Of a stretch of DNA of 64,000 nt, positions 11,875 through 48,060 are shown piece after piece. Made by a program: the position numbers and the translations under genes. The notes under the pieces were generated by a model, which saw only the letters and a list, made by a program, of their open reading frames with translations, made no database searches and had not been told where the DNA came from. The number at the start of each line of letters is the position of its first letter. Within the stretch, counting starts at the first letter, position 1. The stretch is from Mytilus edulis (Eukaryota). The stretch covers positions 50,654,001-50,718,000 of the forward strand of contig NC_092354.1 of the NCBI RefSeq assembly GCF_963676685.1. Reading direction: 5' to 3'.

Positions 11875-12160
11875 TGTAAAATCACAAAAATACTGAACTC
11901 CGAGGAAAATTCAAAACGGAAAGACCCTAATCAAATGGCAAAATCAAATGATAAAAACACATCAAACGAATAGAAAACAACTGTCATATTCCTGACTTGG
12001 TACATGCATTTTCAAATGTAGAAAATGGTGGATTGATCGAGGTTTTTAAGCGTTAAACCTCTCACTTGTATGACACTCGCATCAAATTCCATTATATTTA
12101 CAACGATGCGTGAATAAAACGGACATTATGGGCAAATTGTCAAAATATGGGTACAGCAAG
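11875..12160 (-). repeat. Abundant interspersed repeat (same family as the insert at the S2 start codon)
   Basis: Reverse complement of 28632-28866. Further copies or fragments lie near 20790, 31790, 37075, 48490, 48930-49240, 53565 and 62095. Confidence 0.8.
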
Positions 12161-17809: not shown

Positions 17810-19464
17810 AAAAACAAACAATGGTTAACATCAGACACATGGAATGCAATCGATGAAAGAACAAACCTCAAAGAAAACATTCTCAGCACTAGGTCATCAA
17901 GGTTAAAGGAACAAATACAGAAATAATATGCAGAGAAAGATAAGGAGATAAAGAAAAAAGCTAGAAAAGATAAAGGAACCATCTGTAAGAAAGCGCTGAA
18001 GAAGCAGAAAGGTTACAGCAAGAGGTGTTTTGAGTACAGTATACAATATAGCAAAAAACTACATGTATGTTGACAATTCAAATAACCACCTACAGTAAAC
18101 GACAAAAATGGAAAAACCATTACAACTGAAAGGGAACTGGCTGCATTTTGGGTAAAACACTTCAAGGCTGTTTTGAGTAGACTAAAACCAATACACGAAT
18201 TTCAAGGAGCACCATCTAAAGAATAAATAATAAAGGCAATTAAATCAATGAAATCTGGAAAGGCAGCAGGCATAGATGGTATTTAAGCTGAACTACTGAA
18301 AGCTGACATCAACACAACAACAGTCATACTACATGATCTCTTAAAAAACATATGAGAAAATAAAATATATAAGACTGGGCAAAAGATCTAAACGTAAAAC
18401 TTACGAGAAAGGTAATCTTGGGAATAGTGACAACTGGAGAGGTATAACATTACCCTCAACCCAAGCAAAGCGTTTGCAGGATACTGTTAAACAGGATAGA
18501 CTCCGAACTGTAAGACAGGTTAAGACAGGAACAAGCTGGGTTTAGAAAAGGGAAAGGATGTATTGACCAGATCTTTACTCGAAGGAACATCATTGAGTAG
18601 TGTATAGAATGTAAGACACCTCTATATATCAACTTTATGAATTTCAAGAAAGCATTCGACAGTTTACATAGAGAGACTCTTTGAACAATCATTGTGTCAT
18701 ATGAGTACCACACAATATTTTAACACTTATAAGATGCTTTTATACCAACTTTGAATGTGCTGTGATACTCAACAACAAGGAAACTGACTGGTTTGAAGTA
18801 AAATTTGGAGTACGACAGGGCTGGTTCATCTCACCCATCTTATTCCTGACTGTCATTGACTGGGTGATGCAGACGACCACCAGTGACAAAAAAGGCATCA
18901 CAAAGTCACAGTTTACAACTATAGGAGACCTTGACTTTGCTAGTGCTGATATAGCACTCCTTTCATCAAAACAAGACAATATGCAGGAAAAGACAAAGCG
19001 GCTCAGTCATTTTGCAAGCCAAAAAAGACTCATGAAATGCGACTTAACTCAATATCAAACTTAACACTAAAAGCTGAGGGAAGAGAAATCCAACATGTAG
19101 AAAAAACTTATCTAGGAACTGTGGTTAGTACAGAAGATCCAACACAAACAGATATTATAAGTAGGCTAGCAAAGGGAAGATCTTCATTTCAAAGACTACG
19201 ACCCATTTCCCAAAGTCCAAACAATACAACAGGAAAATAAAGACAAGGCTATATTAGAGTACTGTTAAATATGTCCTTCTGTATAGAAGTGAATGCTGGA
19301 GAGTAACGAAAACAGATGTGTGACCGCTCTCAGGTTTCCACCACAGTTGTCTTAGGCGAATCTGCCAAATTTTATGGTCAAACCGTATAAACATCAGATG
19401 AACATCTCCTTGAAATAACTAATTCCTCATGTATTCTGAAAGAAATTCGAGAGAAACGCTTCAG
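17810..19464 (+). pseudogene. Decayed RTE-clade non-LTR retrotransposon reverse transcriptase
   Basis: Translatable fragments KQWLTSDTWNAIDER, EQAGFRKGKGCIDQIFT, FKKAFDSLHR, GVRQG..SPILF and DLDFAS(A)DIALL, with many stops and frameshifts. It continues at 23789 after a nested insertion. Confidence 0.9.
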
Positions 19465-19642
19465 GGCCCGGTTGTTCTAAAGGCTGGATAAAGTTATCCA
19501 CTGGATAAGCTTGTCCATTGGATAAATGTTTATCCAGTGGATTGCTATCCAGAGGTTAAATTGTGTTGTTCAAAAACTGGTTAAGGATTGTCCAGCTATC
19601 CACTGGACAAAATGCTATCCGGAGGACAACTCCCATAACCAG

Positions 19643-22600
19643 CGAACTTTTAATGATATTATTCAAGCTCTGTTTCAGAAAGTACATCAAGATTCGCGAA
19701 AAGTCAGAAAATGGCATTTTCCATACATGTACCTTTTTCTGTATATTTAACTATGAGTGTACCTTCGGCCCACAATGATATATACCAGAAATTAATTGAA
19801 TATATGTTGATGCAATTCAAATATTAAAGTGTGACATAGGTACGCTCATAGTCAAACACTTAAAAAACAGTTACAAAAATTCATCCTCTTGGATCTACAG
19901 TACTTGTAGAGAGGATTTCCGGTATTCACTGGGATCTGACGACAGACTTATCTTCATGCTAGATAATGGCTAGTTTCTTTAGGACTAAAATTAAACATAT
20001 TTGAGACAGGAAAACAGGATATTTTCGTATCTAATATTCATGGATTAAAAGTGACATTTTAGCAGACCATCGAATTTTAACCAAAATCAGAAGGAGCTGT
20101 GACAAACTTGAATGAAGTTTTTTGATAAGTTGTTCATACTAAAAACAGTTCCTTTTTTCTTTACTAAATTTCAATATTAAGAACCCTGTGACACAGATAT
20201 TAATCATGTCAAAGCATGAAAATGTCTTTTGAAGCGTAAAAACCGTAAAACTTTGTTTAGAATGTAATCTCCGAGGAATGGTGGTTTCTTAACAGGAACA
20301 TATTTTGCATAAATATTCTTTACTCAACAGATGGATATTAATGTTAATTTTAGTACATCTGTACCTTCAGAAACATGTATTTTGTCTTATAAATGACGAG
20401 TTCGTCGCCCTGGAATGTACAAACTAGGCGATTCATCCCCGGATTCATCTTCATTGACGCTTTTAAGAAAGGTGCTTTCTTTCACGTCTGCATTTCTATC
20501 AAGTATGGCATGCCAAATTAACATTTATGGCAACGATTATCATTGATGGCGAAAATAATTTACAAAACTGTATATTAATGAGGGCCTAGACAGGGTATTG
20601 GGAGCATGGGAGAAAGGAGAGAAGGGACAAGAGAAAGGAGAAAAGGGGGTAAAGATGGAGACAAAAATGTATATTAAAATTATTAAAATTTAGCAAGAAA
20701 ACAATTATCTAATAAATGAGTTAATCAAAAGATTCAAGAAAGTGCTAATAAAAAGTAAAAAAAAAAAACAAAAAAAAAAACAAACAAAAAAACGACCCCG
20801 AGGAAATATTGAAACGGAAAGTCCTTAATCTTAACTGCAAAATCAAACAAATGAATAACAACTGTTTTATTTCGAATTGGTACAGGCATTTTCTTATGTA
20901 GAAAATGGTGGATTGGACCTAGTTTTATGGCTTCAAACCTTTCACTTGTATGCCAGTCGCTGAAAATTCCCCAAAATGGCATACTAACGAAAAAAATATT
21001 CGAACCTCGTCACTAATTCATTACGATCTCTTATATATGGAGAAAGACTAAAAACTAACAATTTCAAAGATTTTTTGTGAGCCTTTGAGTGTATAGAGAC
21101 AAATGTCACCATTCTTGTTTTTTTTTTAAGATAAATTGCTTCAAAGTTAACCGATATGCATACAATTTGGAAGAAAAAGGATGACATTTCTTAATATAGA
21201 GTAACGTGCTTTTATCTGAGAGGTATTGAAAAAAACAAGTAACGGGATCTTAATGGTGTTTGTTATTTTGTTTTCATTTTCCCTGTCTGGTTTCGTAAAT
21301 TTCCTATTAATTTTACTGATTTAGTTTTATTTCCAACTAACAGGGTGCACATTCTGCTTCAAAAATGTTATTGAGTGAACAGTGATTTTCAAGTAAAATT
21401 TGAATTTATTGACTTGAGGTTGCAAATATCCAGTGGCAAATATTTCAGGCATGTTCAGGACGATACAATACAATTTGAAACTGTTGTGTCTAAAAGACGC
21501 ATTTCTAATGCAGCCATCAAATATTTTTAATGGTCGTCCAAAAGAAACTTGCTATTATCGCGTAGCATGAATATAAGTATGTCGTCGGATCCAGTGAATA
21601 CCGGAAATCATCTCCAGTCCGCAGTTCGTTTAAAAAAATCGATTATTTAATGAAAACTATTTGTCATTTTTTTTTTTTTAACTATGAGCGTACCTACGGC
21701 CCACTAAAATATTTGAACTGCATCAACATTTATGTTCAAGAAATGTCTTGTATAAATATGATCGTGGGCCGTAGGTACGCTCATATTTTAAAATCATACA
21801 GAAAAAAAGTTTTGAAACTGCAATTTTTCTGCCCTTTTCGCGAATCTTGAGGTGTTTATGTAACAAAATATTTGTTCCGGCATGACATTTGTTCCGCCGG
21901 AACAATTTTCATAGGAAATATGTTCCCCCGGAATTAATATCACAAAAAATATGTTCCAGCACTGTAAAATTTGTTCCGGAACTAATTTTATGACCAAATG
22001 TGAAATGAGTTCCGGAACAAAAATCATAGTTCCATGAACTTTGTTTCAATTTATATTTAAGGGTTTTTAAAAAGTTAAATTAGATCCTGTGATATTAAAT
22101 GAACATGTACATAATTCATAGAAATCAATGAATAAGTTCCGCTCTAACCTATCTTCGAAGAAAATAAGTACCTTTACAACATAATTGCACAGCAAAACAT
22201 TTCTTTGTTACACTTAAATTATAATGCAAGCTAAATTGAGTGTGCTTGCATGGGATACATTTGACGCAATTGAAGGCATGACTGTAAATAATAGGATATT
22301 GTATGTGGTATTCCTCCTTGGTTTCTGTTAACTGGCACGACCCTGTGTTCTAGTCTTTTCTGGATCATTTTTATGGTATTCCACTTTGATTTCTGTTAAC
22401 TGGCACGGCCCTGTGTTCTAGTCTTTTTCTGAATGATTTTTCTTATTCTACTCTATTCTGGCTCAAAAGTGTCATTTTGATATTTCTTTTACGGAGTATA
22501 ATTAAACATTTGCTATACACCACAGAATCTGAATTGGATGATTTATATTTTTCACTTATTATATTATTAATATAATACTTATTTTTATAATGCACTTGAA

Positions 22601-22999
22601 TGATAACTTAAAACCCACTGATGACAAATGCTCAGTATATAAGATAACTTGTTTAATCAGTGGAACATATTTCACAGACAAGGAACTTATTTCACCAGGT
22701 GAGGAACAAATCTCACAGACCCAGAACTTATTTCACCAGGTATGGAACAAATCTTATAAACCTGGAACTAATTTCACCAAGTAAGGAACAATGTTCACCA
22801 ACCTGGTACTTATATCACCAGGTAAAGTGTGGAACTTATTTCATAGAGATGGAACAAATTATATATAAATCATCTGTAAAAAACGGTTCTCCCAGAACAT
22901 ATTTCCTGTAATATTAGTTCCACTGGAACTTTTATCACAGGAACAAATTTTGGCTCACATTTACAGCAACAGAGCATGAATAATATCAGCGGAAGTTGG
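19643..22999. mobile_element. Long-TIR (~300 bp, imperfect) non-autonomous DNA element, superfamily unassigned
   Basis: 19643-19960 is the imperfect reverse complement of 21565-21858 plus 22964-22999. No TSD is recognisable. Confidence 0.7.
21859..22959. mobile_element. TGT...ACA-terminated non-autonomous element with 4-bp TSD (Ginger-like)
   Basis: Starts tgtaacaaaatatttgttcc and ends ggaacaaattttggctcaca. TTTA is duplicated at 21855-21858 and 22960-22963. Many gttcc motifs on the left and ggaac on the right, with internal ~20-40-bp and 68-bp repeats. Confidence 0.65.
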
Positions 23000-23788
23000 A
23001 AAATCTATTGGTGTTTACAAAAATATAGGATTTAATTTTTTTTTTAAATATAGTATTACAATTAATGGCAAGTCACTTTTAATTTGAACGAAATAAGGGG
23101 GTCGTTCTCTGATGCTTATCGTACCTTGTCCTTTAATTTAAGAGAACTGACCAGTAATTCTGATTATTCTATTGTGCTTTCCAAATCGCAGTTGGAAAAT
23201 TTATGCGATATGAAAAACAACTTGTATCGTATTGTTCATCAACAGGTGCGTTGGCAGATCATCTCTTACGTCAGAACTTTTGTGACGTCATGTAATAATT
23301 TAAAGTAAAAGGCGTTCTTAAAATTTGTCCGTTTTTTTTTCACTTCAATATTACACAATAACAAGAAATGCAACTGTAAAAAAACATCTAAGAGTAATTT
23401 TAATCTGTGTGGAAACTGGAATGGCATAATTTCTCTGGGTAGGTCTTTTCAAATCATCATAAAGCAAAATTGTTTAAACCTCTATGCTACCTTCAGAAAA
23501 TCTTTACCTAGCCTGAAATTCTATATATGGTTCACCGTGAAATTCACTATTTATGCGTGGTTTATATGTCTATTACACATCATACAACACAATGGGCAGC
23601 CATATTTAGCCTCTGGATAAGAACTTATCCGAACCCCCAGACACTGGACAAATTTGGTCCGTGGTTAAGCTATTTTATCCACTGGACAATTTTTGAACAA
23701 CCAGATTTGTCCAGTGGACAAAAGTTATCCAGTGGATACAGACTTTATCCTGTGGACAACTTTATCCAGCCTTTTGAACAACCGGGCC

Positions 23789-23850
23789 CAGATGGTTTGG
23801 CATTTTCTCAGGATGAAAGTATCCAATATCACCAGAATATCTCCTAGATG
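23789..23850 (+). pseudogene. Continuation of the RTE LINE after the nested insertion
   Basis: aga tgg ttt ggc continues the K-R-F|R-W-F-G motif. Confidence 0.65.
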
Positions 23851-25039
23851 AAGGCTCAAAGTAAAAACCAATACACAATTACAAGCACAAAAATACCTTA
23901 CAGATGAATGCGCATGTAAGTAGATTCAAAGTGTTAAATCGGCTGATTAGATACTTAGTCATCTTAAAATGTAAAATGACCGGTTCTACTTCATAATTGA
24001 TTTCGTACAGCAACGCCATAAAAAAAACTGGAACACGTTGCTTGAGCTACATTCTAAAATTGCTAACAAGACAGAAAAAAAAATTTGATGAAAAAAAAAA
24101 TCAAACTGTTTTCATTTTTTTAAACCTTTTGAATGATTACATTAGTCAAACATCAAAGTGAACGAATGAGAGTTTTCTGGAGTTTGAAGCAGACCAATGC
24201 ATTGATATTCATATATTATTAATACAAATGTATACTACATTTCTGCCATATATTTTTCTATCTTTTCATTAATAGTTACACTAAAATGGATTAACGTATA
24301 CAATCTGTTTGGTTTGCTAAGAATACATATAGTTTTAAACGTAAATTGTGACATTGTGTGTTTTTTTATTTGATAAAAAAGGAAAACAACTAAAAAATAA
24401 ATTAAACTAGATTTGGTATTGTAAGCATTACCCAAACTGAACATTGTCAAAGTAGCAGTAACCATTTATTGTGTACCAAAGGAAAATGACACATATATTT
24501 ATCAATGTATGAATCGGCATGTCTTTACCCCCTCTCCCTTTTCCCCCTCTTTTTCTTCCCGTAAAATAAGTTTGAATTCGATACATAGTTTGGGAATTAC
24601 TTTGAATTTAAAATTACCAACTAAACCAACGCGAGAAGAAGAACGTGTTGTCACGTGATGCGCTAGTATATTATCGCGGCACATAGTCTTATAGTCTTTT
24701 TAGAGGGGACTTTGGAACAGACAACACGTGTATGAATTGACTGAGCGGCATACTAACTGTTCCTTATGTTCCTCAATAGCCCGCGTATCACACGATACAT
24801 ATATCTTATCGTGTACAATTTAATTGCACGTTTAACAATTGTTTTCAGCTAATGCGTATATTTTATCAGGTGTTTGATTCCCGGATGTGTATTTTAATGA
24901 AAGTGTAGAAATTCCACTAATATGTACTCATAGTGTTTCTCGCTCTACCAGTGAAGATTCTCTCTTCAAAGCACTTTTTTTCAAAAGAATAGAGGCACGT
25001 TAAATAAGATTTATTTTGTAGTATATTATAGCAGATGTT

Positions 25040-25690
25040 TTGCAATACATGTTTGTACATGTATTTGAACGTATGCACAGAATCTTGATTTCATATTTTT
25101 CCTTAAACTTGCGAGTTGTTTGATATGTTCTTTTGCTGTTTCCATGGCAACGGCGGTCATTTTTAAAATTTCAAATACAGATGACATTTCAAAACCATTT
25201 AACCGAGGTTGAGCAAATATGTTACTTTTACGTTTTTTCCAATTGTGTTAATATAAAACTATCTCAAAAGTTACAGCAGCAATCTAAAAAATTTCAACAG
25301 CAATCTAAAAAAATTCCAACAGCAATCAATTCTACTTTTATACTATTGAAATGGTTGATTTTTTTGAATAAGTTGATAATTTTCCATTGCCATTTTGAAA
25401 GTTCTTAAGATGAATGGCACAGTTTCGAATGATAAGTTTTAATTTCTGAAAGTTTCATTCAACTTGGACATTTTTCGGTTTTTCACGTTTTGCCGTTTCC
25501 ATGTTAGCGGCGGCCATCTTGAAATTCCCAAACCCTAAGTGCACATCTACACATGGGGATTGTCATTATAGGACAGTTTTATCAATAGTTGTGAAATCTT
25601 CTCCGAGAACTAAGCAAGATAAAAAATGTGTTGAAGAAAATTCGAAAGAATAACAATATGTCCCCTTTTTCTAAAGGGACGACATAGTTA
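25040..25690 (+). mobile_element. Degenerate Helentron-like fragment
   Basis: Repeated ttgc.gtttccatg....cggcgg.cat and a terminal hairpin atgtcccc..gggacgacat. Confidence 0.4.
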
Positions 25691-27470
25691 TTATCCTGTA
25701 TGAACTAAGTGAACTAAATGAACTTGATTCAATCTTCAAGCAATGAATTCAATACGAGATTAAACCACTAGTAAATGGAACAAGCATCCTCATTATCTAG
25801 CTACACTATATGTACATCTGATGCTGCCGAAATTGGTACCATTAAGGTTATTATCTATTTAATAGACATGTATCATTATTATGACAATTAACCTGCTTAA
25901 AAATTACAGAACTTACCCATTTAGCTATATGAAGAAATAAATTATTTCTATAATTTTTATTATTTTTACAGAAGTTCTTTTTGTTCGTGGATTAAGGTAG
26001 TCATGTGATAGACTTTACCCTGACTCCGGGAAGTTATTGTTCTTTGTCAATATTCTAAGGAATTTGTTTTTTGGAAGAATTTAATTTCGAACGCAGATAG
26101 ATTTTGATGGCAGATTTATGCATATGTTAGAATAGACTTTAAGCGATTAGAAGTTTGACATATATGTGACCCTTATGACATTTCGGGCTAATGGTGGTAT
26201 ATGCCATAGTAGATTGTTTACGTGAAATTAATAATTTAGGATAATATCCCATTTAAATTGTGTTTAAAATTCACACATTATACCGGTCATAGTTAAAAAT
26301 AATTCTAAAACGGGCCAAAACTATACTTGAGATCATTAAAGGCATTTCCAATTGCAGTGTTTATGTTATTCTATAATTTAGTATAAATAATGATGACAGC
26401 ATTAACATTAAGTTTTTTTTAGTCAATCTAGTGTTCACATTGTAAGGATATATATCTGTACATGTTAATCAAACAAGATATTCTTGCCCATAATGACCAA
26501 AAAAATGGTCTCATCCCATGTCCGTTACTATGTATATGTTATATATGTTTGTCTGTCTTAAAACTATATTAACAACTTTTATGTGTTGATCAAAGTTTCC
26601 TTGTATCCCCTAATATTGTTGATTATGCTGTTTAACTGTTCAATCTTACTCTGCATTGATATATGATTTCTTCTTGAGAATAGATATCAAGATCAGGAAA
26701 AGAGCAGTGGTCATTGTAAGTATTAGCTTTATTCAAAGTTAGTTCAACAGGATATTATTTTTTCGTTTACATATTGAGGTCGTCATCATTGAGAGCCAAT
26801 ATATCATCCAAATATCTTAAAGTATTGTAATTTTTTGGTAAAAACCTAGTTTGATGTCGTAGGCTCTAATCGATGTTATAAAACAGTGCCAGAAAAAACC
26901 AAAACATAACTTTTGATGGTTACAAGAAATATTGTGTAAACAGTACTTTAGTTATGGGAACAGAACATTTATTCTTTCACACTACTTATCTATGACATAG
27001 ATAAATCGAACAGACACAAAGAAGTAACAAATAAAACAAAATACAATTCGAGGTAAAGCAAGTATAAATATACAATGTATAGTTCTTATATAAGATTTTA
27101 ACGGTGACACATGCTACAAACTTACTGGTAACATGTGTTTATTTACAGGTAAAACCTTTGCTAAAATCCCACTAGTTCTAAAAATAATAAAATGAGATAG
27201 TTCTGCATCAAGACAGTCACCTTTATACAATATGCGTATTCGGACATATCTTCAAATATCCCATAACGAAAATTGATGAAAAAATATATGTTTTTTATAA
27301 AGATCGGAACAACTGAGTTTTTATTCAGGAGCTGACTGTATTTTACCATCTTTAAGCAGCTATTTATGCATGATATAAAACGGTCAATTGTATCAAAGTA
27401 AAAAATAAAACTGCTCAATTGATTTCTATATTTTTTACTAAAACAATAGTCAAACATATGTTACTATATA

Positions 27471-28631
27471 CTATGGTCTTGCATATCTTCCAATGAATAG
27501 CGGTGTACCTGTTTCGTCATCCTGAATTAAAAACAGGAAAGGATGATCAGCAATAAATTGAAATGGCTGTGGCTTAGGATCTTGTACTGAAGCAATTACA
27601 CCAGTTATTGTAGTAACAGCTGCCGCTTCCGTTCCCTCTTCGTTCACTTCGATATAAGCTTTGTGACATGCATCAGACACGACAACGCGTGTTTGATCTG
27701 ATTCGAAGATTTCACTAAAGTCTGCAATTTTGTCGTCAAAGATTTCTGTTATTCCTAAAGCTGTACAAACTGGCTTCAAATCGTACTCGCTTGTCATTGT
27801 AAATTTGGGAATTCTTATGAGTGTCTTTTGAGTCTTTAGGCCTTTAACAAGTGTATCGACATTATCTATAGTAAGTTTACTTTCTAGTTCAGAGAGTCCG
27901 TCACCAGAATTTGGCAAAACAAATACCATTGAGATCTGGTTTCCTTGATATGGCAATTGTAAAATCTTGCAGTCAAGCGAAAGGTCTTCGCCCGACTTTG
28001 CATCAAACTCACCATACATCATATTAACTAGCTTTTGCTCATTCGCTTTCACGAAAAAGTTTCTTTGTAAAGTGTCATTCTTGTTGAACTCTTTTTTCCA
28101 AGTACCTTTAAAGTAAATTGCGTTTACTAATACTACTAAAGTATTTGCATCAACTACACCTTTTGGAATCATATCTTTTATTATATTGTTGGTATTTTTT
28201 GAAATCCAATCATTTATTGTCAATCGTGACTGTTCTGCTTCTGTTACAAAATCCAAGAGTTCAACATCACTTCCATAATATGTAGTCGCTTTTGTACTAA
28301 AAGTGTTCAAAAGATTTAGACCCTTCCTGGCGAACAACCTGTTTGCAATAGATATTGATACTCCTTTTGCTGTTCTCGTTAAGAGTTCATTATTAAGACG
28401 TTTGTATCCGTGGTCAATATCGTCTGGTTCTTCATATTCGAAAATAACAGATTTCATCTGGTTTTTAGTCGTTTTGCCGGTTCCAAGCATAAGAAGTAAC
28501 AATGCTGACGTGATACTGTATGGCGAAATGAATTCATTTCCAGTTCTGTCTAGTTTGCTATACAAGGAGTTGGAAAAATTTGCAATTCCTTCTTCAAAGA
28601 CAACATTCGATACATTTACTTGAGAAGCCAT
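27471..28631 (-). CDS. Serpin S2, 386 aa from the paralogous ATG (398 aa if the TE-derived ATG at 28667 is used)
   Basis: Closely similar to S1. RCL EEGTEAAAVTTITGVIA-SVQDP, predicted P1 Ala. The MASQ start matches S1 and S3. Confidence 0.95.
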   Translation of the reverse strand: MASQVNVSNVVFEEGIANFSNSLYSKLDRTGNEFISPYSITSALLLLMLGTGKTTKNQMKSVIFEYEEPDDIDHGYKRLNNELLTRTAKGVSISIANRLFARKGLNLLNTFSTKATTYYGSDVELLDFVTEAEQSRLTINDWISKNTNNIIKDMIPKGVVDANTLVVLVNAIYFKGTWKKEFNKNDTLQRNFFVKANEQKLVNMMYGEFDAKSGEDLSLDCKILQLPYQGNQISMVFVLPNSGDGLSELESKLTIDNVDTLVKGLKTQKTLIRIPKFTMTSEYDLKPVCTALGITEIFDDKIADFSEIFESDQTRVVVSDACHKAYIEVNEEGTEAAAVTTITGVIASVQDPKPQPFQFIADHPFLFLIQDDETGTPLFIGRYARP

Positions 28632-28866
28632 CGGTGACAATATAATGGAATTTGATGCGACTGTCATACAAGTGAGAGGTTTAGCTAGCTATAAAACCAG
28701 GTTCAATCCACCATTTTCTACATTTGAAAATGCCTGTACCAAGTCAGGAATATGACAGTTCTTGTCCATTCATTTTTGATGCGTTTTGTTATTTGATTTT
28801 GCCATGTGATTATGGACTTTCCGAATTGATTTTCCTCTGAGTTCAGTATTTTTGTGATTTTACTTT
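28632..28866 (+). mobile_element. 235-bp interspersed repeat inserted immediately 5' of the S2 ATG
   Basis: The empty site cat|ttaagagc is seen in S1 and S3. The insert matches the family at 11875-12160 and 48930-49240. Confidence 0.92.
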
Positions 28867-29389
28867 TTAAGAGCCTATAACACGAAATACATCAACTATG
28901 ATAGTTGCAAGTTATTTTAAGATGCATCTTTATATATACTGGTCTAATCGGCTTTGACACATGTTTGTTTGTAAGAATATGCATTTATATATTTATATAC
29001 ATAGCTTGTAAATCATGAATTAATTAACATACTTCGCAAAACAGCACCACAATCATCATTCACATATGTGACTCAGTAGCATAGAATTGCATTATGTTTT
29101 ATTTATCTTGCTGACAGAAGTGTGCATTTGAAAAAAAGGAAGCAGTTTTATATTTTTTCGATTATGTAATTCTCTTTAAAATACGTTTGTATTACTTGTG
29201 GCTGGTTGTTTTTGATTTTTTGTAAAGTAGTTGTAAATAAAGGTATCAGAATGTATTGGATAAGTTTGGAAGGCAGATTAAACACTGTAAGAATGAAACA
29301 AAGTTGTCTTTTGTGATTTACTGATTTACTATATATTTCAATGCTCTTAAATTTTGTACTTGTTTGGCTTTATAAATATTTTGATATGA

Positions 29390-29432
29390 GCGTCACTGAT
29401 GAGTCTAATGTAGACGAAACCGCATCTGGCGC
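29390..29432 (+). ncRNA. Minimal hammerhead ribozyme, degenerate stem III
   Basis: GCGUCA CUGAUGA GUCUA-AUG-UAGAC GAAA CCGCA UC UGGCGC, within repeat fragment 29336-29465. Confidence 0.65.
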
Positions 29433-30916
29433 ACTAAATTATAATCCTGATACCTTTGATAACTATTGAATACATAATAGATTTCTCAAAATAACCAAGA
29501 ATAATTAAAGAATAGTTATATAAATGTAAGACTTAAGAAATATAAATTGCAGTTTATCATGTTCCGTTTCATGCAGGAACGAAAAGAAAGTATAAAATTG
29601 ATCAAATGAATAATAAAAGTACAATGAGGTCTCTGTGATTTACATTTAATGTACTGTATGCAGACAATGCAAAAAGCACAGTATTACTTTTAAATGGTTT
29701 ATCGACAAGTAGCTAACACTGTTTGATGACGATTTGTAAAAAAACGTATTTGTGCAGTTTTGCTTTTCATTTTTTTTCAAGGAGTTTTTTCTCTGATGAT
29801 TTTGTTGTTGTTGTTGTTGTGTATCTGTTAAGTTAATTTTTCATAGACAGATTGAAAAAAATACACAATAAGATATTGAGAGATCAACATGTGGTCAACA
29901 AAAAAGTGTCTATACACATGCTTATCACTTAAGACCTTGCAATCATGTTTGGTATAGATACTAGCTTGTCGTTGATGATCCTATGTTGACAAACAGATGT
30001 CTTTCATACAAAAGTCAACACGCTAAAGAAGGTTATTATCTAGGGATAAGTTTCAAATAATTCTTAATATCACAATAACTATAATAGATATATACTAGAT
30101 ATGTAAATATTGGACATTACATTATGTATTTATGATGAAAACTCGAGCCATTTGAACTTTTTTTGAAGATAGACTATTCCACTAGGATCGACGGATTGAA
30201 AGTTATTATTACAAATGCATAGGAGCCGACTTATCCTTATTTTCTATTTTTGAAACTTTTTACGAAAGGTTAAAACTGAGCCATGAATACAATCTATTGT
30301 ATATTTAGAAATAATTTAAAGATAGTTTGATCTTGACCTGTATTCCTACAACGCAAATCCGACATTAAACCACGATTTTATTATTACAACTTCATCTGGC
30401 CTTGACCATGTTGACCCTTTGTGGTTTGTGTCTTTATGAAAAACTGCTAACAATTAAAATAATTTAATATATCATCTATTATGAAGTATATGAACATGCA
30501 CAACAATCAGATATATGTAGGCATACACAATCATTGATATGAAAATCGTGAGATGTGTAACGTTATGAAATAAACAAATTTCATTTAAACAACATATGAG
30601 TAGTACAGGAAAAACTACAGGTATTTATTCGGTCGTCAAAAATATGTCAAACTTGACCGTAATATAATTTATAACAGAAAACATGTGATTACAAAATATA
30701 ACAGTGAAATATTTCTTAATTTTCATAAAAGCAGTAACTTTAAATATTTGTAAAAAAATTACTAATGACAATAAGCGGATTTTATGCTCACAGATAATCT
30801 CCAATTTAGACATGTATTTAGCACAGAATAAAATTCGGCCGTATAGTAAACTAATACAGGCATTAGATGATAAAGTTGGAAACAGTATAGAAATCAATTG
30901 CCGATTTATACATAGA

Positions 30917-31070
30917 AGAGGGACGAAATATACCATAGGGACAGTCAAACCCATAGATTGAAAACAAACTGACAACGCAATGGCTAAAAATAAAAAAGAC
31001 AGACAAATAATTGTAAAAAAGACTTAAAATAGAAAAACGAAGGACTACGCAACACGAATCCCTCCAAAAA
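30917..31070 (+). repeat. Abundant interspersed repeat (agagggacgaaa.atacca.agggacagtcaaac family)
   Basis: Copies near 36167, 59284, 52740 (reverse), 54495 (reverse), 44815 (reverse) and 11500 (reverse). Confidence 0.7.
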
Positions 31071-32560
31071 TAGTAGTTGTGTTGTAAAATGTCTCATTAA
31101 TACAAACACAGTAATTTAACATGTTTTGCCGACAGTAACTAATGAAAAATATCAGACCCATGATTCTAAACGAGGACAATAGGTTGGGTTAAACATGTTT
31201 GTGAATTGAAACTTAAAACAGCACAATACAAAGAATTTTTTTCACACCCAACAACACATCTTAAAACTGCATTGATTTGTGTTAAGTTGAAATAAATAAC
31301 CAAAAGAAAAAGGAAAGCTGTATCTTTCAAATGGTGATGATTAAACAATTGGAATTATATTCTGTCTATGAAGAAATAACATAAAAATGTGGTGCACACT
31401 GAACCCGCGTTACTGTTGAAAGTGGCCTTAAACATCAATCAACCAATTACAGCTTGAATTTTTCATTTTGCATGTGAAGGTGTGTAGACGTTTTGGTATA
31501 TGGTATTATATAGCCACCAAATTAATGTGAATTAACCTGTTCTTAAATGACTGGTAAATAGAAGTTGATCTTTCAGACTGATCCACTGCAGAAAATCGCT
31601 ACTTTAATGAAAATTTGGTTGCAATCAATTACAATTTTTTTTCGGTCTTTGTTAAACTGGTTCAGGAGCTATATTTGATCTCTAACTGGATCATTTGTGA
31701 TTAAGATTATAACACAATTGTGACTACTGTACTTCTTTTTTGTCAATTTCTACCTTTGTCAAATTAAGGGAATTGTATGTGATTATCATACAAGTGAAAG
31801 GTTTAGCTAGCTATAAAACCATGTTTAATCCACCATTTGCTACATAAGAAAATCCCTGTACCAAGTTTGGATTATGATAGCATATGAAAAGAACTTTCTG
31901 TTTTGGATTTTTCTTGGAGCAAGGTATTTTTGTTGTTTTACTTTTTAGAACATACTGAACTGACGGTAAACTACCTTAGTGCAGTACTGAATTTACTGCT
32001 ATTGGCTAGTTTTAGAATTGACGGCAGGTCTGAAAAAGGCCAAATAGTATTTTTGTCAAACTTTATACATAAGATCAGAATGAAATTCCACTGATTGATG
32101 CGCATTTTTCAAGAAACATATCATAGAACCTCGGCTTTTGAATGCAATAATACGGGAAAACCAACAATTATCATTAGAAACAAACAAGACAAGACCGAAA
32201 AAAATAAAAAGCAAGCAAACACTATTTTGTTTTTATAAAACGTTATAAAAAAATCACACAAATTATACAAACTAACTTAAAAGAGATGTTTATTTACAAA
32301 TATAATATAACAATGATTTCCTTATGCTTTGAATTTAAAACTTGATAGCTTTTCAAGAAACTTAATGGTTTCAAGACAGATAGGTATGAACACAATCTGT
32401 ATATACAAAGTAAGTATCAAAACTAAAATGTATACTACTTCTAAACAAACTTTGAAGTCAATCTATTCATCAAAATATGATTTTTCAAGTATGATCATTT
32501 TACACTTTTGAGGAAGTAGGTGCATTTCCCTGTTTCTTCCATAATTATGTTACTGTTACA

Positions 32561-33721
32561 CTATGGCCTGGCATATCTTCCAATAAACAGCGGTGTTCCT
32601 GTTTCGTCATCCTGAATGACAAACAGGAAAGGATGATCTGCCACGAATTCAAATGGCTGAGGATCAGGGATCCTCGCCGAAGCTAATGCAAGATTTAATG
32701 TAGTAGCGGCTGCAGCTTCACTTCCCTCTTCGTTCACTTCAATAAAAGCTTTGTGACGTGCATCAGTTACGCGCACGCTAGTGGCATCAGATTTGAACAT
32801 TTCACTAAAGTCAGCAAGTTTGTCGTCAAAGATTTCTGTAATTCCTAAAGCTGTACAAACTGGCTTCAAATCGTACTCGCTCGTCATTGTAAATTTCGGA
32901 ATTCGTATTATTGTTTCTTGTGTCTTTAAACTGCTTAAGAGTGTTTTGAAAGTATTAACGGTAAGTTTACTTTCTAGTTCAGAGAGTCCGTCACCGGAAT
33001 TTGGCAAAACAAATACCATTGAGATCTGGTTTCCTTGATATGGCAATTGTAAAATCTTGCAGTCAAGCGAAAGGTCTTCGCCCGACTTTGCATCAAACTC
33101 ACCATACATCATATTAACTAGCTTTTGCTCATTCGCTTTCACGAAAAAGTTTCTTTGTGAAGTGTCATTCTTGTTGAACTCTTTTTTCCACGTACCTTTG
33201 AAGTAAATTGCGTTTACTAATACTACTAAAGTATTTGCACCAACTACACCTTTTGGAATCATATCTTTTATTATATTGTTGGTATTTTTGGAAATCCAAT
33301 CATTTATTGTTAACCGTGACTTTTCGGCTTCTGTTACAAAATCCAAGAGTTCAACATCACTTCCATAATATGTAGTCGCTTTTGTACTAAAAGTGTTCAA
33401 AAGATTTAGACCCTTCCTGGCGAACAACCTGTTTGCAATAGATATTGATACTCCTTTTGTTGTTCTCGTTAAAAGTTCATCATTAAGACGTTTGTATCCC
33501 TGATCTATATCATCTGGTTCTGCATATTCGAAAATAACAGATTTCATCTGGTTTTTAGTCGTTTTGCCGGTTCCAAGCATAAGAAGTAACAATGCTGACG
33601 TGATACTGTATGGCGAAATAAATTCATTTCCAGTTCTGTCTAGTTTGCTATACAAGGAGTTGGAAAAATTTGCAATCCCTTCTTCAAAGACAACATTCGA
33701 TCCATTTACCTGAGAAGCCAT
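32561..33721 (-). CDS. Serpin S3, 386 aa, chimeric (S1/S2-type N-terminal two thirds, S4-type C-terminal third)
   Basis: Full set of serpin motifs. RCL EEGSEAAAATTLNLALA-SARIP, predicted P1 Ala. Confidence 0.97.
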   Translation of the reverse strand: MASQVNGSNVVFEEGIANFSNSLYSKLDRTGNEFISPYSITSALLLLMLGTGKTTKNQMKSVIFEYAEPDDIDQGYKRLNDELLTRTTKGVSISIANRLFARKGLNLLNTFSTKATTYYGSDVELLDFVTEAEKSRLTINDWISKNTNNIIKDMIPKGVVGANTLVVLVNAIYFKGTWKKEFNKNDTSQRNFFVKANEQKLVNMMYGEFDAKSGEDLSLDCKILQLPYQGNQISMVFVLPNSGDGLSELESKLTVNTFKTLLSSLKTQETIIRIPKFTMTSEYDLKPVCTALGITEIFDDKLADFSEMFKSDATSVRVTDARHKAFIEVNEEGSEAAAATTLNLALASARIPDPQPFEFVADHPFLFVIQDDETGTPLFIGRYARP

Positions 33722-34246
33722 TTAAGAGCCTATAACATGAAATACATCAAGTATGATAGTTGCAAATTATTTTAAGATGCATCTTTATATATACCGGTAA
33801 AATCGGCCTTGACACATGTTTGTTTGTAAGAATATGCATTTATATATTTATATACAAAGCTTGTAAATCATGAATTAATTAACATACTTCGCAAAACAGC
33901 ACCACAATCATCATTCACATATGTGACTCAGTAGCATAGAATTGCATTATGTTTTATTTATCTTGTTGACAGAAGTGTGCATTTGAAAAAAAGGAAGCAG
34001 TTTTATTTTTTTTTTTCGATTATCTAATTCTCTTTAAAATACGTTTGTATTACTTGTGGCTGGTTGTTTTTGATTTTTTGTAAAGTAGTTGTAAATAAAG
34101 GTATCAGAATGTATTGGATAAGTTTGGAAGGCAGATTAAACACTGTAAGAATGAAACAAAGTTTTTTTTGTGATTTACTGATTTACTATATATTTCAATG
34201 CTCTTAAATTTTGTACTTGTTTGGCTTTATAAATATTTTGATATGA

Positions 34247-34290
34247 GCGTCACTGATGAGTCTAATATAGACGAAACGCGCGTCTGGTGT
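34247..34290 (+). ncRNA. Minimal type I hammerhead ribozyme
   Basis: GCGUCA CUGAUGA GUCUA-AUA-UAGAC GAAA CGCGCG UC UGGUGU, within repeat fragment 34194-34323. Confidence 0.85.
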
Positions 34291-34575
34291 ACTAAATTAT
34301 AATCCTGATACCTTTGATAACTATTGAATACAGAATAGGTTGTCTCAAAATAACCAAGAATAATTGAAGAATAGTTATATAAATGTAAGACTTAAGAAAT
34401 ATAAGTTGCAGTTTATCATGTTCCGTTTCATGTAGGAACGAAAAAAGAGTATAAAATTGATCAAATGAATTATAAAAGTACTATGAGGTCTCTGTGATTT
34501 ACATTTAATGTACTGTATGCAGACAATGCAAACAGCACAGTATTACTTTTAAATTGTTTATCGACAAGTAGCTAA

Positions 34576-34971
34576 TAAAATTGAGAATGGCAACGGGGAA
34601 TGTGCCAAAGAGACAACAACCCGACCATAGAGCAGACAACAGCAGAAGGTCAATAACAGGTCTTCAATGCAACGAGAAATTCTCGCACCCGGAGGCGTCC
34701 TTCCGCTGACCCCTAAACAAATATATACTGGTTCAGTGATAATGAACACCATACTAAACTCCAAATTGTACACAAGAAACTAAAAGTTAAAATAATACAA
34801 GACTAACAAAGGTCAGAGGCTCCTGACTTGGGACAGGCGCAAAAATGCGGCGGGGTTAAACATGTTTGTGAGATCTCAACCCTCCCCCTATACCTCTAGC
34901 CAACGCAGAAAAGTAAACGCATAACAATACGCACATTAAAATCCAGTTCAAGAGAAATCCGAGTCTGATGT
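34576..34971. mobile_element. ~400-bp interspersed repeat present only in the second duplication unit
   Basis: Empty site at ~29716. Related copies at 39593-39766 and, diverged, 58510-58900. Confidence 0.85.
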
Positions 34972-37862
34972 CTGTTTGATGACGATTTGTAAAAAAACGT
35001 ATTTGTGCAGTTTTGCTTTTCATTTTTTTTTTCAAGGAGTTTTTTTCTCTGATGATTTTGATGTTGTTGTTGTTGTTGTTGTTGTGTATCTGATAAGTTA
35101 ATTTATCTTAGACAGATTGAAAAAACACACAACAAGATATGGAGAGATCAACATGTGGTGAACAAAATAAGTGTCTATACACATGCTTATCACTTAAGAG
35201 CTTGCAATCATGTTTGGTATAGATACTAGCTTGTTGTTGATGATCGTATGTTGACAAACGGATGTCTTTCATATAAAAGTCAACACAAAGAAGGTTTTTA
35301 GCTAGGGATAAGTTTCAAATAATTCTTAATATCACAATAACTATAATAGATATATACTAGATATGTAAATATTGGACATTAAATTATGTATTTATGATGA
35401 AAACTCGAGTCATTTGAAATATTTTTGAAGATAGACTATTCCACTAGGATGGACGGATTGAACGTTATCATTAGAAAGACCCGACTTATCCTTATTTTCT
35501 ATTTTTGAAACATTTTACGAAAGGTTAAAACTGAGCCATGAATACAATCTATTGTATATTTAGAAATAATTTAAAGATAGTTTGATCTTGACCTGTATTC
35601 CTACAACGCAAATCTGACATTAAACCACGATTTTATTATTACAACTTCATCTGGCCTTGACCATGTTGACCCTTTGTGGTTTGTGTCTATGAAAAACTGC
35701 TAACAATTAAAATAATTTAATATATCATCTATTATGAAGTATATGAACATGCACAACAATCAGATATATGTAGGCATACACAATCATTGATATGAAAATC
35801 GGGATATGTGTAACGTTATGAAATAAACAAATTTCATTTAAACAACATATGAGTAGTACAGGAAAAACTACAGGTATTAATTCGGTCGTCAACAATATGT
35901 CAAACTTGACCGTAATATAATTTAGAACAGAAAACATGTGATTACAAAATGTAACAGTGAAATATTTCTTAATTTTCATGAAAGCAGTAACTTTAAATAT
36001 TTGTCAAAAATTTACTAATGACAATAAGCGGATTTTATGCTCACATATAATCTATTTAAACATGTATTTAAGAGAGAATAAAATTCGGCCGTATAGTAAA
36101 CTAATACAGGCATTACATTATCAAGTTGGAAACAGTATAGAAATCAATTGCCGATTTATACATAGAAGAGGGACTAAATATACCAGAGGGACAGTCAAAC
36201 GTATAGATTGAAAACAAACTGACAACGCAATGGCTAAAAATAAAAAAGACAAACAGACAAATAATAGTACAAAAGACTTAAAATAGAAAAACGAAGGACT
36301 ACGCAACACGAACCCCTCCAAAAATAGTAGTTGTGTTGTAAAATGTCCCATTAATACAAACACAGTAATTTAACATGTTTTGCCGACAGTAACTAATGAC
36401 AAATATCAGACCCATGATTCTGAACGAGGACAATAGAGCATGTAGAGTGGGTTAAACATGTTTGTGAATTGAAACTTAAAACAGCACAATACAAAGAATT
36501 TTTTTCACACCCAACAACACATGTTAAAACTGCATTGATTTGTGTTAAGTAGGAAATAAACAACCAAAAGAAAGAGGAAAGTTGTGTCTTTCAAATGGTG
36601 ATGATTAAACAATTGAAATTATTTTCTGTCTATGAAGAAATAACATAAAAATGTGGTGCACACTGAACCCGCGTTACTGTTGAAAGTGGCCTTAAACATC
36701 AATCAGCCAATTACAGCTTGAATTTTTCTTTTTGCATATGAAGGTGTGTAGACGTTTTGGTATATGGTATTATATAGCCACCAAATTAATGTGAATTAAC
36801 CCGTGTTTACATGACTGGTAAATAGAGGTTGATCTTTCAAACTGATCCACTGCAGAAAATCGCTACTTTAATGAAAATTTGGTTGCAATGAATTACAAGT
36901 TTTTCGGTCTTTGTTAAACTGGTTCAGTAGCTATATTTGATCTCTAACTGGATCATTTGTGATTAAGATTATAACACTATTGTGACTACTGTACTTCTAT
37001 TTTGTCAATTTCTACATTTTATGTATGTTTGTTTTGTTCATACATCGTTGTCAAATTAAGGGAATTGTATGTGATTATCATACAAGTGAAAGGTTTAGCT
37101 AGCTATAAAACCAAGTTTAATCCACCTTTTTCTACATAAGAAAATCCCTGTACCAAGTTTGGATTATGATAGCATATGATAGGAACTTTCTGTTTTGAAT
37201 TTTTTTGGAACAAGGTATTTTTGTTGTTTTTCTTTTTAGAACATACAGAACTGACGGTAAACTACCTTAGTGCAGTACTGAATTTACTAGTTTTAGAATT
37301 GACCGCAGGTCTGAAAAAGACCAAATAGTATTTTTGTCAAACTTTATAAATAAGATCAGAATGACATTCCACTAACTGATGCGCATTTTTCAAGAAACAT
37401 ATCATAGAACCTCGGCTTTTGAAAGCAATAATACGGGAAAACCAACAATTAACATTAGAAACAAACAAGACAAGACCGAAAAAAATAAAAAGCAAGCAAA
37501 CACTATTTTGTTTTTAGAAAACGTTATAAAAAAATGACACATACTATACAAACTAACTTAAACAGAGAAGTTAAAAGAGATGTTTATTTACAAATATAAT
37601 ATAACAATGACTTCCTTATGCTTTGAATTTAAAACTGCATAGCCTTTAAAGAAACTTAATGGTTTCAAGACAGATAGGTACATGAGGTATGAACACCTCT
37701 GTATACACAAGGAAAGTATCCAAACTAAAATGTATACAACTTCTTAACAAACTTTGAAGTGAATCTATTCATCACAATATGATTTTTCAAGTATGATCAT
37801 TTTACACTTTTGACGAAATAGGTGCATTTCACTGTTTCTTCCATAACTATGTTACTGTTACA

Positions 37863-39146
37863 CTATGGCCTGGCATATCTTCCAATAAACAGCGGTGCCC
37901 CTGTTTCGTCATCCTGAATGACAAACAGGAAAGGATGATCTGCCACGAATTCAAATGGCTGAGGATCAGGGATCCTCGCCGAAGTTAATGCAATATTTAA
38001 TGTAGTAGCGGCTGCAGCCTCGCTTCCCTCTTCGTTCACTTCAATAAAAGCTTTGTGACGGGCATCAGTCACGCGGACGCGAGTGGCATCAGATTTGAAC
38101 ATTTCACTAAAGTCAGCAATTTTGTCGTCAAAGATTTCTGTAATTCCTAAAGCTGTACAAACTGGCTTCAAATCGTACTCGCTTGTCATTGTAAATTTCG
38201 GAATTCGTATTATTGTTTCTTGTGTCTTTAAACTGCTTAAGAGTGTTTTGAAAGTATTAACGGTAAGTTTACTTTCTAGTTCGGACAGTCCATCACCAGA
38301 ATTTGGCAAAACAAATATCATAGAGATCTGATTTCCCTGATATGGCAGTTGTAAAACCTTGCAGTCAAGCGAAAGGTCCTCACCAGATTTTGCATCAAAC
38401 TTGCCATACATCATATTTACCAGCTTCTGTTCATTCGCTCTCACGAAAAAGTTTCTTTGTGAGGTGTCATTCGTGTTAAATTCTTTTTCCCATTTGCCTT
38501 TAAAGTAAATAGCGTTTGTTAATACTAATAAAGTATTTGCATTCAGAAGACCTTTTGGAATCATATTTTGTATTCGGTTGTTTGTATTATTAGAAATCCA
38601 ATTATTTATTGTCAATCGTGAATTTTCCGCTTCTTTTACAAAATCCAAGGGTTCAACATCACTTCCATAATATGTAGACGCTTTTGTAGAAAAAGTGTTC
38701 AACAGGTTAAGACCCTTACTGCTGTATAACCTGTTTGCCATAGATAATGTAACTCCGGATGTTGTTCTCGTAAAGAGCTTCTCATTAAGAAGTTTGTATC
38801 CCTGGTCAATATCATCTGGTTCTTCATATTCGAAAATGACCGACTTCATCTGTTTGTTTGTCGTTTTGCCGGTTCCGAGCATAAGGAGTAACAATGCTGA
38901 CGTAATACTGTATGGTGAAAGGAATTCATTTCCAGTTCTGTCTAGTTTGCTGTACAAAGAGTTGGAAAAATTTGCAATTCCTTCTTCGAAGACTATATTC
39001 GATCTATTGACCGGAGACGAAAAATGTGTAAACCCTTCTTCGAAGACTATATCCGAACTATTAACCAGAGAAGAAAAATTCGCAATCCCTTCTTCTAAAA
39101 TTATATTCGATCCATTAACCTGAGAAGCCATGGAAGAGGTATTCAT
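37863..39146 (-). CDS. Serpin S4, 427 aa, with triplicated N-terminal 18-aa segment
   Basis: Full set of serpin motifs. RCL EEGSEAAAATTLNIALT-SARIP, predicted P1 Thr. An alternative start lies at 39131 (MASQ). Confidence 0.96.
   Translation of the reverse strand: MNTSSMASQVNGSNIILEEGIANFSSLVNSSDIVFEEGFTHFSSPVNRSNIVFEEGIANFSNSLYSKLDRTGNEFLSPYSITSALLLLMLGTGKTTNKQMKSVIFEYEEPDDIDQGYKLLNEKLFTRTTSGVTLSMANRLYSSKGLNLLNTFSTKASTYYGSDVEPLDFVKEAENSRLTINNWISNNTNNRIQNMIPKGLLNANTLLVLTNAIYFKGKWEKEFNTNDTSQRNFFVRANEQKLVNMMYGKFDAKSGEDLSLDCKVLQLPYQGNQISMIFVLPNSGDGLSELESKLTVNTFKTLLSSLKTQETIIRIPKFTMTSEYDLKPVCTALGITEIFDDKIADFSEMFKSDATRVRVTDARHKAFIEVNEEGSEAAAATTLNIALTSARIPDPQPFEFVADHPFLFVIQDDETGAPLFIGRYARP
38962..39123 (-). 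repeat. In-frame 54-bp tandem repeat x3 in S4
   Basis: gaaaaa anchors at 38965, 39019 and 39073. Encodes QVNGSNIILEEGIANFSS / LVNSSDIVFEEGFTHFSS / PVNRSNIVFEEGIANFSN. Confidence 0.95.
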
Positions 39147-39874
39147 GATAAAGTAAATATACTAGGAGTATTTTTTTTTCAATGATGCATCTTTATATAT
39201 ACCATGTATACTTTACTTGTCAGCCTTGACAAATGTTTGTTTGTAAGACTATTTATAAGCTTTAATGCCATGCATTAATCAACGTCATTTGACTAACAGT
39301 ATGTCTACCATCAGTGACACGCCTAACTTATACCTTGGTATTTTGATTACGGCTTTCTTCTCTTGTTGACAGTTGTGTGCACTTTAATAAGACCTCATTA
39401 ACTTTATTCTTTTAAATTATTTTATTCGGTTAATCCTAATAAAGCCAACATTTGTTTGTTACCTTTTTATGACGGCATTTGTTTTATTGAGGATTTAGTC
39501 CCATTTCTATATCTGTATAAAGGTAATTGACACCAAAGTGTAATATCGACTATCAAGTGCATTTGACGAGTGAATTAGTCCAATTAGAAACTAAAATTGA
39601 GAATGGAAATGGGGAATCTGTCACAGATACAACAACCCGACCATAGAGCAGACCACAGCTGAAGCCCACCAATGGGTCTTCAATGCAGCGAGAAATTTAC
39701 GCACCCGGAGGCGTCCTTCACCTGGCCCCTAAACAAATGTGTATACTAGTTCAGTGATAATGGACGCTTACAGAATTGAAGGATTTTTAGTTTTGAGAAT
39801 GAGTCATTACAAAATAACCACAACTTATTTGAGAAAATTATGTAAATGTATGAGTGTCAGGTAGACTCACTGTA

Positions 39875-47586: not shown

Positions 47587-47636
<50 letters not shown>
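47587..47636. repeat. (TA)n microsatellite
   Basis: About 25 TA units. A second tract lies at 48003-48060. Confidence 0.98.
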
Positions 47637-47638
<2 letters not shown>

Positions 47639-47968
47639 AAAATTATTAAAAGATAAAAACGGTTTCAATGCATCACTTTTTTACTAGTACTTTCACTGCT
47701 TCCGCAGATCTTCAGGTAATGTGACTTGTATATAAATAAAACAATTGATTGACGTTAACAATAGTATGACGTTAACAAATACAAGGGAGACTACTAATGA
47801 CATTAGTAGTCTCCCTTGTATTTGTTAACGTCATACTATTGTTAACGTCAATCAATTGTTTTATTTATATACAAGTCACATTACCTGAAGATCTGCGGAA
47901 GCAGTGAAAGTACTAGTAAAAAAGTGATGCATTGAAACCGTTTTTATCTTTTAATAATTTTCTTATAT
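47632..47968. repeat. Perfect 337-bp palindrome (168-bp arms, 1-nt spacer at 47800), probable inverted Penelope-like terminal repeat
   Basis: The arms read as exact reverse complements, lie between two (TA)n tracts, and contain a hammerhead motif. Confidence 0.93.
47881..47919 (+). ncRNA. Minimal hammerhead ribozyme motif (mirror copy on minus strand 47681-47719)
   Basis: UUAC CUGAAGA U-CUGC-GGAA-GCAG-U GAAA GUAC UA GUAA: core boxes, GNRA-capped stem II, palindromic AGUACU stem III, CUA triplet. The first pair of stem II is a U-U mismatch. Confidence 0.7.
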
Positions 47969-48000
47969 GTTACCAGCATACGGACTTTACTTAACTTTTT

Positions 48001-48002
<2 letters not shown>

Positions 48003-48060
<58 letters not shown>
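48003..48060. repeat. (TA)n microsatellite
   Basis: About 29 TA units. Confidence 0.98.

Follow-up and report, generated by a model that had tools for sequence, protein, structure and literature searches.

A mosaic serpin gene in a Mytilus tandem cluster, most probably formed by unequal exchange between its two flanking paralogues

Introduction

Hybrid genes formed by unequal crossover are known from several loci, among them the haemoglobin anti-Lepore genes, the red/green opsin hybrids and the CYP21A2/CYP21A1P chimeras. In the serpins, the hinge motif at P17-P9 of the reactive-centre loop lets the loop insert; inhibitory members of the family form a covalent complex with their target protease, and the P1 residue defines specificity. 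Serpin genes have been described in clusters with a history of exchange and loop diversification: breakpoints were detected by GARD in SERPINA3-like genes of the rodent SERPINA1/SERPINA3 clusters (PMC12646145), and bovine SERPINA3 forms a tandem array with divergent reactive-centre loops (PMC4593666). The mussel locus described below resembles these mammalian arrays in its birth-and-death pattern, in variation focused on the reactive-centre loop, and in recombination among paralogues (PMC12646145, PMC4593666). Gene presence/absence variation is extensive in Mytilus galloprovincialis (PMC7653742, PMC10514466). Our literature search found no described Mytilus serpin cluster and no chimeric serpin attributed to unequal crossover.

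Here we show that one gene of a mussel serpin cluster, S3, is a two-part mosaic, that its switch point falls within a 20-bp interval, that the segment around it is duplicated, and that the same junction is present in independent data. S3 is in all probability a real hybrid of its two neighbour genes.

Results

A cluster of intronless serpin genes

The window, by which we mean the whole stretch of DNA analysed, comprises 64,000 nucleotides of Mytilus edulis assembly GCF_963676685.1 (contig NC_092354.1, positions 50,654,001 to 50,718,000, forward strand). Six intronless serpin ORFs, S1 to S6, lie on its minus strand (Table 1), and the serpins of the window are 99-100% identical to Mytilus galloprovincialis proteins; judged by these proteins, the DNA is that of a mussel and most likely of M. 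galloprovincialis. Each of S1, S2, S3 and S4 has a full-length Pfam Serpin match; that of S3 to PF00079 scores 369 bits (E = 3e-110) and covers profile positions 3-370 of 370. The best solved relatives of S3 are 9j91_A and serpin B3/B4/LEI (E = 1e-66 to 1e-70), and a TATA-like motif stands about 65 nt upstream of its ATG.

Several features of the surrounding sequence may be recorded here. At its N-terminus (41 codons, about 39024-39146, minus strand) S4 has an extension of three tandem copies of an N-terminal motif of about 16 aa, NGSNIILEEGIANFSS / LVNSSDIVFEEGFTHFSS / PVNRSNIVFEEGIANFSNS, which its 427-aa orthologues in M. edulis, M. trossulus and Lola share. Between the S1 unit and S2 lies a 10-kb gap (17600-27300) without a serpin, in which there are a reverse-transcriptase-like ORF (18762-19064) and repeats; it probably represents transposon insertions into an older S1/S2 duplication, the spacer homology of which ends near 17612. 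A 161-bp tandem repeat forms two mutually inverted arrays (2470-3098 and 8198-8974, 84-92% identity), and a near-perfect palindrome lies upstream of S5 (47587-48034; opposite-strand self-match of 89%).

Table 1. Coordinates of the serpin genes, of the parts of S3 and of the duplicated units, in positions of the window
Feature	Position	Strand	Basis or remark
S1	13629-14789	-	serpin ORF
S2, donor type of S3 5' part and promoter	27471-28667	-	ORF, alignment
S3, intact intronless serpin ORF, 386 aa, probable hybrid gene	32561-33721	-	ORF and Pfam
S4, donor type of S3 3' part and downstream flank	37863-39146	-	ORF, alignment
S5	about 45.7-46.9 kb	-	serpin ORF
S6	about 56.6-57.8 kb	-	serpin ORF
S3 upstream region, S2-type	33722-34575	-	alignment; ~96-97% identical to 28866-29716
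S3 5' part, S1/S2-type, codons 1-247	32981-33721	-	sites, tree, dS
Crossover interval, 20-bp tract identical in S1/S2/S3/S4, S3 codons 248-254	32961-32980		bounding sites 32960 and 32981
S3 3' part, S4-type, codons 255-386, with reactive-centre loop	32561-32960	-	sites, tree, dS
Reactive-centre loop P17-P4', S3 codons 331-351	32669-32731	-	hinge EEGSEAAAA, count from P15 Gly
S3 P4, Leu344	32690-32692	-	codon table
S3 P1, Ala347	32681-32683	-	codon table
S3 3'UTR, inferred	32267-32560	-	AATAAA 32294-32289; RNA contig end 32267
Duplication unit A: S2 5' part, spacer A, S3 3' part	27891-32980		global alignment
Duplication unit B: S3 5' part, spacer B, S4 3' part	32981-38282		self-comparison and global alignment
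235-bp interspersed repeat, unit A only, at -1 of S2 ATG	28632-28866		other copies 11871-12108(-), 49015-49241
394-bp high-copy repeat, unit B only	34578-34971		alignment gap; 84% identical to 39581-39765

S3 changes type once, at a 20-bp tract

Positions at which S2 and S4 differ in a five-gene alignment were taken as informative sites. To the left of 32961, counted over 32492-32960 (the 3' part of the gene with 69 nt of 3' flank), S3 has the letter of S4 at 118 of 122 such sites and that of S2 at 4. To the right of 32980, where the count takes in 11 nt of upstream sequence (33722-33732), it agrees with S2 at 96 of 107 sites and with S4 at 11; eight of these discordant sites are coding and represent private S2 substitutions, S1 having the same letter as S3 and S4. 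The switch lies between 32960, the last S4-type site, and 32981, the first S2-type site; the two-part structure is highly significant (Fisher p = 3.8e-46), and a maximum chi-square scan places the breakpoint in the same interval (permutation p <= 5e-4). Maximum-likelihood trees of the two halves conflict, each with good support: the 3' part groups S3 with S4 (97/95) and S1 with S2 (97/98), and the 5' part unites S1, S2 and S3 (100/99) with S4 outside.

The 20-mer at 32961-32980 has exactly four copies in the window, at homologous positions of S1 (14029), S2 (27871), S3 (32961) and S4 (38263), where none would be expected by chance. The reading frame of S3 is intact across the junction. The first-pass annotation of this DNA had described S3 as matching S2/S1 to the right and S4 to the left of this tract, with an in-frame crossover mapped to the 20 bp common to S2, S3 and S4; our site counts, the scan and the uninterrupted ORF bear out each of these points, and the copy in S1 is an addition to those it had listed.

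Relative to its respective parent, S3 has a dN/dS of 0.15 in the 5' part and 0.20 in the 3' part. With these values the gene looks functional, and it looks to have been kept under purifying selection since its origin; its ORF is intact in both known alleles.

The whole spacer between S4 and S2 is duplicated

Global alignment of units A and B extends over the whole 3.7-kb spacer, with 183 mismatches in 4824 aligned positions (3.8%), which confirms the earlier reading that the entire S4-S2 spacer had been duplicated. By self-comparison, 28866-29716 matches 33721-34575 at 96%, and 29719-33715 matches 34972-39017. The divergence is evenly spread along the unit (3.0-4.3%), amounting to 3.0% in the 5' coding part, 3.2% and 4.3% in the first and second parts of the spacer, and 3.0% in the 3' coding part. 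Two large indels separate the units, both of them interspersed repeats (235 bp and 394 bp); the longer lies within a stretch of word depth 1e5-1e6 in all DNA runs, and the shorter, at 28632-28866, was inserted after the duplication.

The 235-bp repeat also parts S2 from the promoter region common to S1 and S3 and gives S2 an upstream in-frame ATG (MTVASNSIILSP), an extension that is found as well in RefSeq XP_076080299. Both spacers contain very high-copy repeats (30800-31999 and 34200-34999) that reach a word depth of up to 1e6 in every run and show many loose ends and joints.

Synonymous divergence dates the two sides of the junction alike: dS is 0.095 between S3 and S2 in the 5' part and 0.084 between S3 and S4 in the 3' part, and it is 0.42-0.55 between S2 and S4. 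The S4-referenced alignment reaches to 31460, and over this distance the downstream flank of S3 is 89-98% identical to that of S4; it shows no relationship to that of S2 (about 50%). As far as 31460, no second switch back to S2-type or to a third type was seen downstream of S3.

The donor of the 5' part

In its 5' coding part S3 is equally close to S1 and S2 (private sites: 4 in S3, 16 in S1, 17 in S2; no sites group S1 with S2), and the coding sequence alone cannot tell which of them was the parent. The upstream flank of S3 is 96-97% identical to the S2 flank, as against 73-91%, with indels, to the S1 flank. We favour S2 over S1 as the 5' parent because of this flank, the position of the genes, and a parent-like S2 allele in another assembly. 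Of the proposal that an S4-type loop had been placed on an S2-type scaffold and promoter, the promoter is thus upheld; for the scaffold, the 5' coding part taken by itself fits S1 equally well.

The parent-like allele is Lola protein VDI74432 (P0020), a truncated model that is 100% identical to the N-terminal part of S3 over 200 aa, continues past the tract as S1/S2-type ('TIDNVD'), and whose accession directly precedes that of Lola S4 (VDI74433). The same unrecombined form fits a contig of 593 nt from DNA run X9 (32867-33459), which has 25 differences and 2 gaps relative to the window; those listed are two indels on the left side of the tract (32934, 32939) and, on its right, substitutions at two S3-private sites (32996, 33200). 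This form appears to be the parental S2 allele, so that the divergence between S2 and S3 in the window overstates the age of the event.

Within 33083-33710, blocks of the S3 sequence alternate in their affinity, agreeing with S2 at 33083-33164 and 33335-33376 and with S1 at 33240-33326 and 33460-33522. Such a pattern suggests that short gene conversions, or recombination between alleles, took place among S1, S2 and S3, and, as the 5' part is also equidistant from S1 and S2, other exchanges have shaped these three genes too.

The reactive-centre loop

The hinge of S3 (P17-P9, codons 331-339) fits the motif E-E-G-[TS]-E-A-A-A-A and aligns to the hinges of 9j91_A and serpin B3. The canonical count from the hinge, in which P15 is the Gly of codon 333, makes Ala347 the P1 residue; Ala347 stands opposite the Arg that is P1 of 9j91_A by the same count from the hinge Gly of that chain. 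The alignment with serpin B3 continues through the hinge and has a gap within the loop.

The S4 loop has Thr at P1 and Ile at P4, as do all S4-type proteins of Lola, M. edulis and M. trossulus, and both known S3 alleles have Ala and Leu at these positions. The states in S3 are derived, since the S4 orthologues in three assemblies keep Thr/Ile. The divergence of P1 (Ala in S3, Thr in S4) that the first reading had picked out is accompanied by a change of P4 from Ile to Leu. Between S3 and S4 the 3' part holds 12 differing sites, of which five change the amino acid; two of the five are P4 and P1, and two others, I302L and A376T, have the residue of the Lola S4 allele and were probably inherited by S3 as S4 polymorphism. 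We considered a micro-conversion from S2, which shares the GCT codon, as the source of the P1 Ala and rejected it: the adjacent P3-P2 codons are S4-type, and the P4 state is unique to S3. The P4 and P1 changes agree with the known variability of serpin loops and are too few for a test of selection; they may have altered the protease specificity of S3.

The junction in independent data

The same mosaic is found in a RefSeq protein of M. galloprovincialis, XP_076081443 (P0002), which differs from S3 at three amino acids (99% identity). Its N-terminal part falls in the S1/S2 clade (100/99) and its C-terminal part in the S4 clade (100/99), and it is the only other clade-switching protein among 16 close Mytilus proteins.

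All sequencing runs were used as Logan contigs, whose depth sums paralogues and repeats and hence is no measure of copy number. In the PacBio transcriptome run X17, a 380-nt contig on 32780-33159 bridges the junction with 2 differences; it extends 181 nt beyond the tract on the left, over about 24 diagnostic sites, and 179 nt on the right, over about 20. One of the two differences, at 32996, recurs in all four runs, so that here the window has a letter peculiar to the individual that was assembled. The contigs of X17, with 0-2 differences each, map exclusively to 32267-33568, on the gene body and 3'UTR of S3, and none was found on the unique parts of either spacer; the contig end at 32267 follows an AATAAA (32294) by 27 nt. 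These observations agree with an S3 mRNA whose 3'UTR measures about 290 nt, with the proviso that an RNA library can hold DNA; S3 is probably transcribed.

In DNA run X2, S3-type and S4-type letters coexist at the P1 (32683) and P4 (32692) sites, and both loop types are thus present in one individual. Run X1 has only S4-type letters at the loop sites, in contigs that show presence, not absence.

Other assemblies add to this picture. In M. edulis, S1/S2-type and S4-type proteins are encoded on one contig with consecutive accessions, and the Lola protein set contains S1, a gene at the S2 position and S4, with no chimera seen. No reciprocal hybrid, with an S4-type 5' and an S2-type 3' part, was seen among the protein sets compared. 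As judged from protein sets and short contigs, the number of genes at the locus appears to differ between assemblies.

Discussion

Origin of S3

The arrangement can be accounted for by a single event. The ancestral order, in the direction of transcription on the minus strand, would have been S4 - spacer - S2. S2 on one chromatid or homologue would have paired with S4 on the other, and the exchange would have resolved inside the 20-bp tract common to the paralogues. The duplication product would then read S4 - spacer B - (S2 5' part / S4 3' part) - spacer A - S2, and the alternative product of the same exchange would be a deletion with a single S4 5' / S2 3' hybrid. By this route the C-terminal third of an S4-type protein, with its reactive-centre loop, would have come to stand in frame behind an S2-type promoter and N-terminal two thirds; the hybrid would later have been kept by purifying selection and have acquired the changes P1 Thr to Ala and P4 Ile to Leu.

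S3 has the polarity of the duplication product, the downstream gene S2 giving the 5' part and the upstream gene S4 the 3' part, and it is located between the two spacer copies, flanked by intact S4 and S2. The first-pass annotation had called it the expected product of unequal crossover, and every prediction of that account which we tested, namely a single switch, the polarity, the duplicated segment, equal dS and conflicting trees, agreed with the data. We infer with considerable confidence that S3 is the duplication product of an unequal, homology-guided exchange between S2 and S4.

The length of the tract counts against this model. For classical homologous recombination, 20 bp is a short tract when the paralogues have an identity of 84%; the longest perfect tract shared by S2 and S4 in the coding sequence is 56 bp, the 20-bp tract ranks about tenth, and it borders a block in which S2 and S4 are only 64% identical. 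A tract that is short, not the longest available and placed beside such a block would suit a replicative template switch (MMBIR/FoSTeS-like), in which the 20 bp served as microhomology and the same structure arose by a route other than meiotic or sister-chromatid crossover. We nevertheless consider this origin unlikely: the outcome is a simple head-to-tail duplication at exactly homologous, in-frame positions, the junction has no inserted or templated bases, and the 100 bp on the 5' side of the tract, at 89% identity, could support homeologous pairing. Template switch and crossover leave the same end product, and the present data do not tell them apart. A pre-existing third serpin copy between S2 and S4, made into a mosaic by gene conversion from S4, S2 or both, is less probable still. 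Short exchanges did take place in the cluster, as the alternating S1-like and S2-like blocks in the 5' coding part show, but conversion on the scale of S3 needs two tracts, together longer than 5 kb, whose ends coincide at one exact point and which span all of the non-coding, repeat-rich spacer while remaining evenly diverged. The tract over the spacer would have to run for more than 4 kb and end at precisely that internal point of the gene. Equal dS on both sides of the junction and a downstream flank that never reverts to a third, independent sequence type also speak against it, and S3 lacks the mark of conversion, a donor tract flanked on both sides by recipient-type sequence.

An assembly error, in which the two alleles of a locus with two genes were strung together as units A and B, S3 being a false join, had been named beforehand as the reading that would overturn the proposal, with the caution that divergence alone does not exclude it. 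The caution is sound. Heterozygosity is 1.73% in one mussel (PMC7653742) and 3.27% by k-mers in another individual (PMC11183127), so that the 3.8% between the units comes within reach of a range of 1.7-3.3% (PMC7653742, PMC11183127); moreover, the longest contig on the locus measures 593 nt, no read spans the locus, and the linkage of S2, S3 and S4 rests on the assembly and on the logic of hybrid polarity. The objection itself fails on other grounds. S3 is not an assembly artefact, because the junction is present in an independent protein and in RNA-run data, with 3 amino-acid differences in XP_076081443 and 2 differences in the X17 contig. The window is without N, a search of the whole 1.37-Gb genome found no alternative copy (haplotig) of the locus, each unit has a repeat insertion of its own, and S3 differs from both of its sources, to which a false join would be identical. 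We therefore hold a mis-assembly to be extremely improbable.

Significance

S3 is a clean but ordinary case of serpin family growth, and it leaves general understanding unchanged. Its value lies in being unusually clean and fully reconstructible: a tandem immune-type family gains a member by domain shuffling between paralogues, and the parents, the duplicated spacer, a breakpoint interval of 20 bp and a probable transcript are all available. It adds unequal exchange between paralogues as a mechanism to the copy-number and presence/absence variation of Mytilus, and S2, S3 and S4 are three natural proteins with which the contributions of scaffold and reactive loop to serpin specificity could be tested.

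A bolder reading, which we put forward as speculation and think rather doubtful, would make S3 a young M. galloprovincialis gene that arose by exchange between divergent haplotypes and still segregates as a presence/absence variant, its P1 and P4 changes being an adaptive retargeting of the S4-type loop under an S2-type promoter. If true, S3 would amount to a loop-swap experiment made by nature, observed while the two parents and a parent-like allele are still there.

Comparison with known systems

The presence/absence variation described in Mytilus (PMC7653742, PMC10514466) concerns the same genus, and the comparison with the S3 locus is by protein sets and short contigs. From the mammalian serpin arrays (PMC12646145, PMC4593666) the mussel locus differs in that a single event can be traced to a 20-bp interval while its two parent genes are still present, and in that its genes are intronless, without obvious signal peptide, and closest to clade-B-type serpins.

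The classical hybrid genes offer a further comparison. As in anti-Lepore haemoglobin and in the opsin and CYP21 hybrids, S3 is a hybrid lying in the duplication product with both parents flanking it and the intervening segment duplicated, and its breakpoint falls in shared sequence, at a homologous, in-frame position. Unlike in those systems, the identity between the parents of S3 is no more than 84%, and the identical tract measures 20 bp. Nor is S3 a disease allele: unlike those hybrids, it is an intact gene that looks to be under purifying selection, is probably transcribed, and is known from at least two sources.
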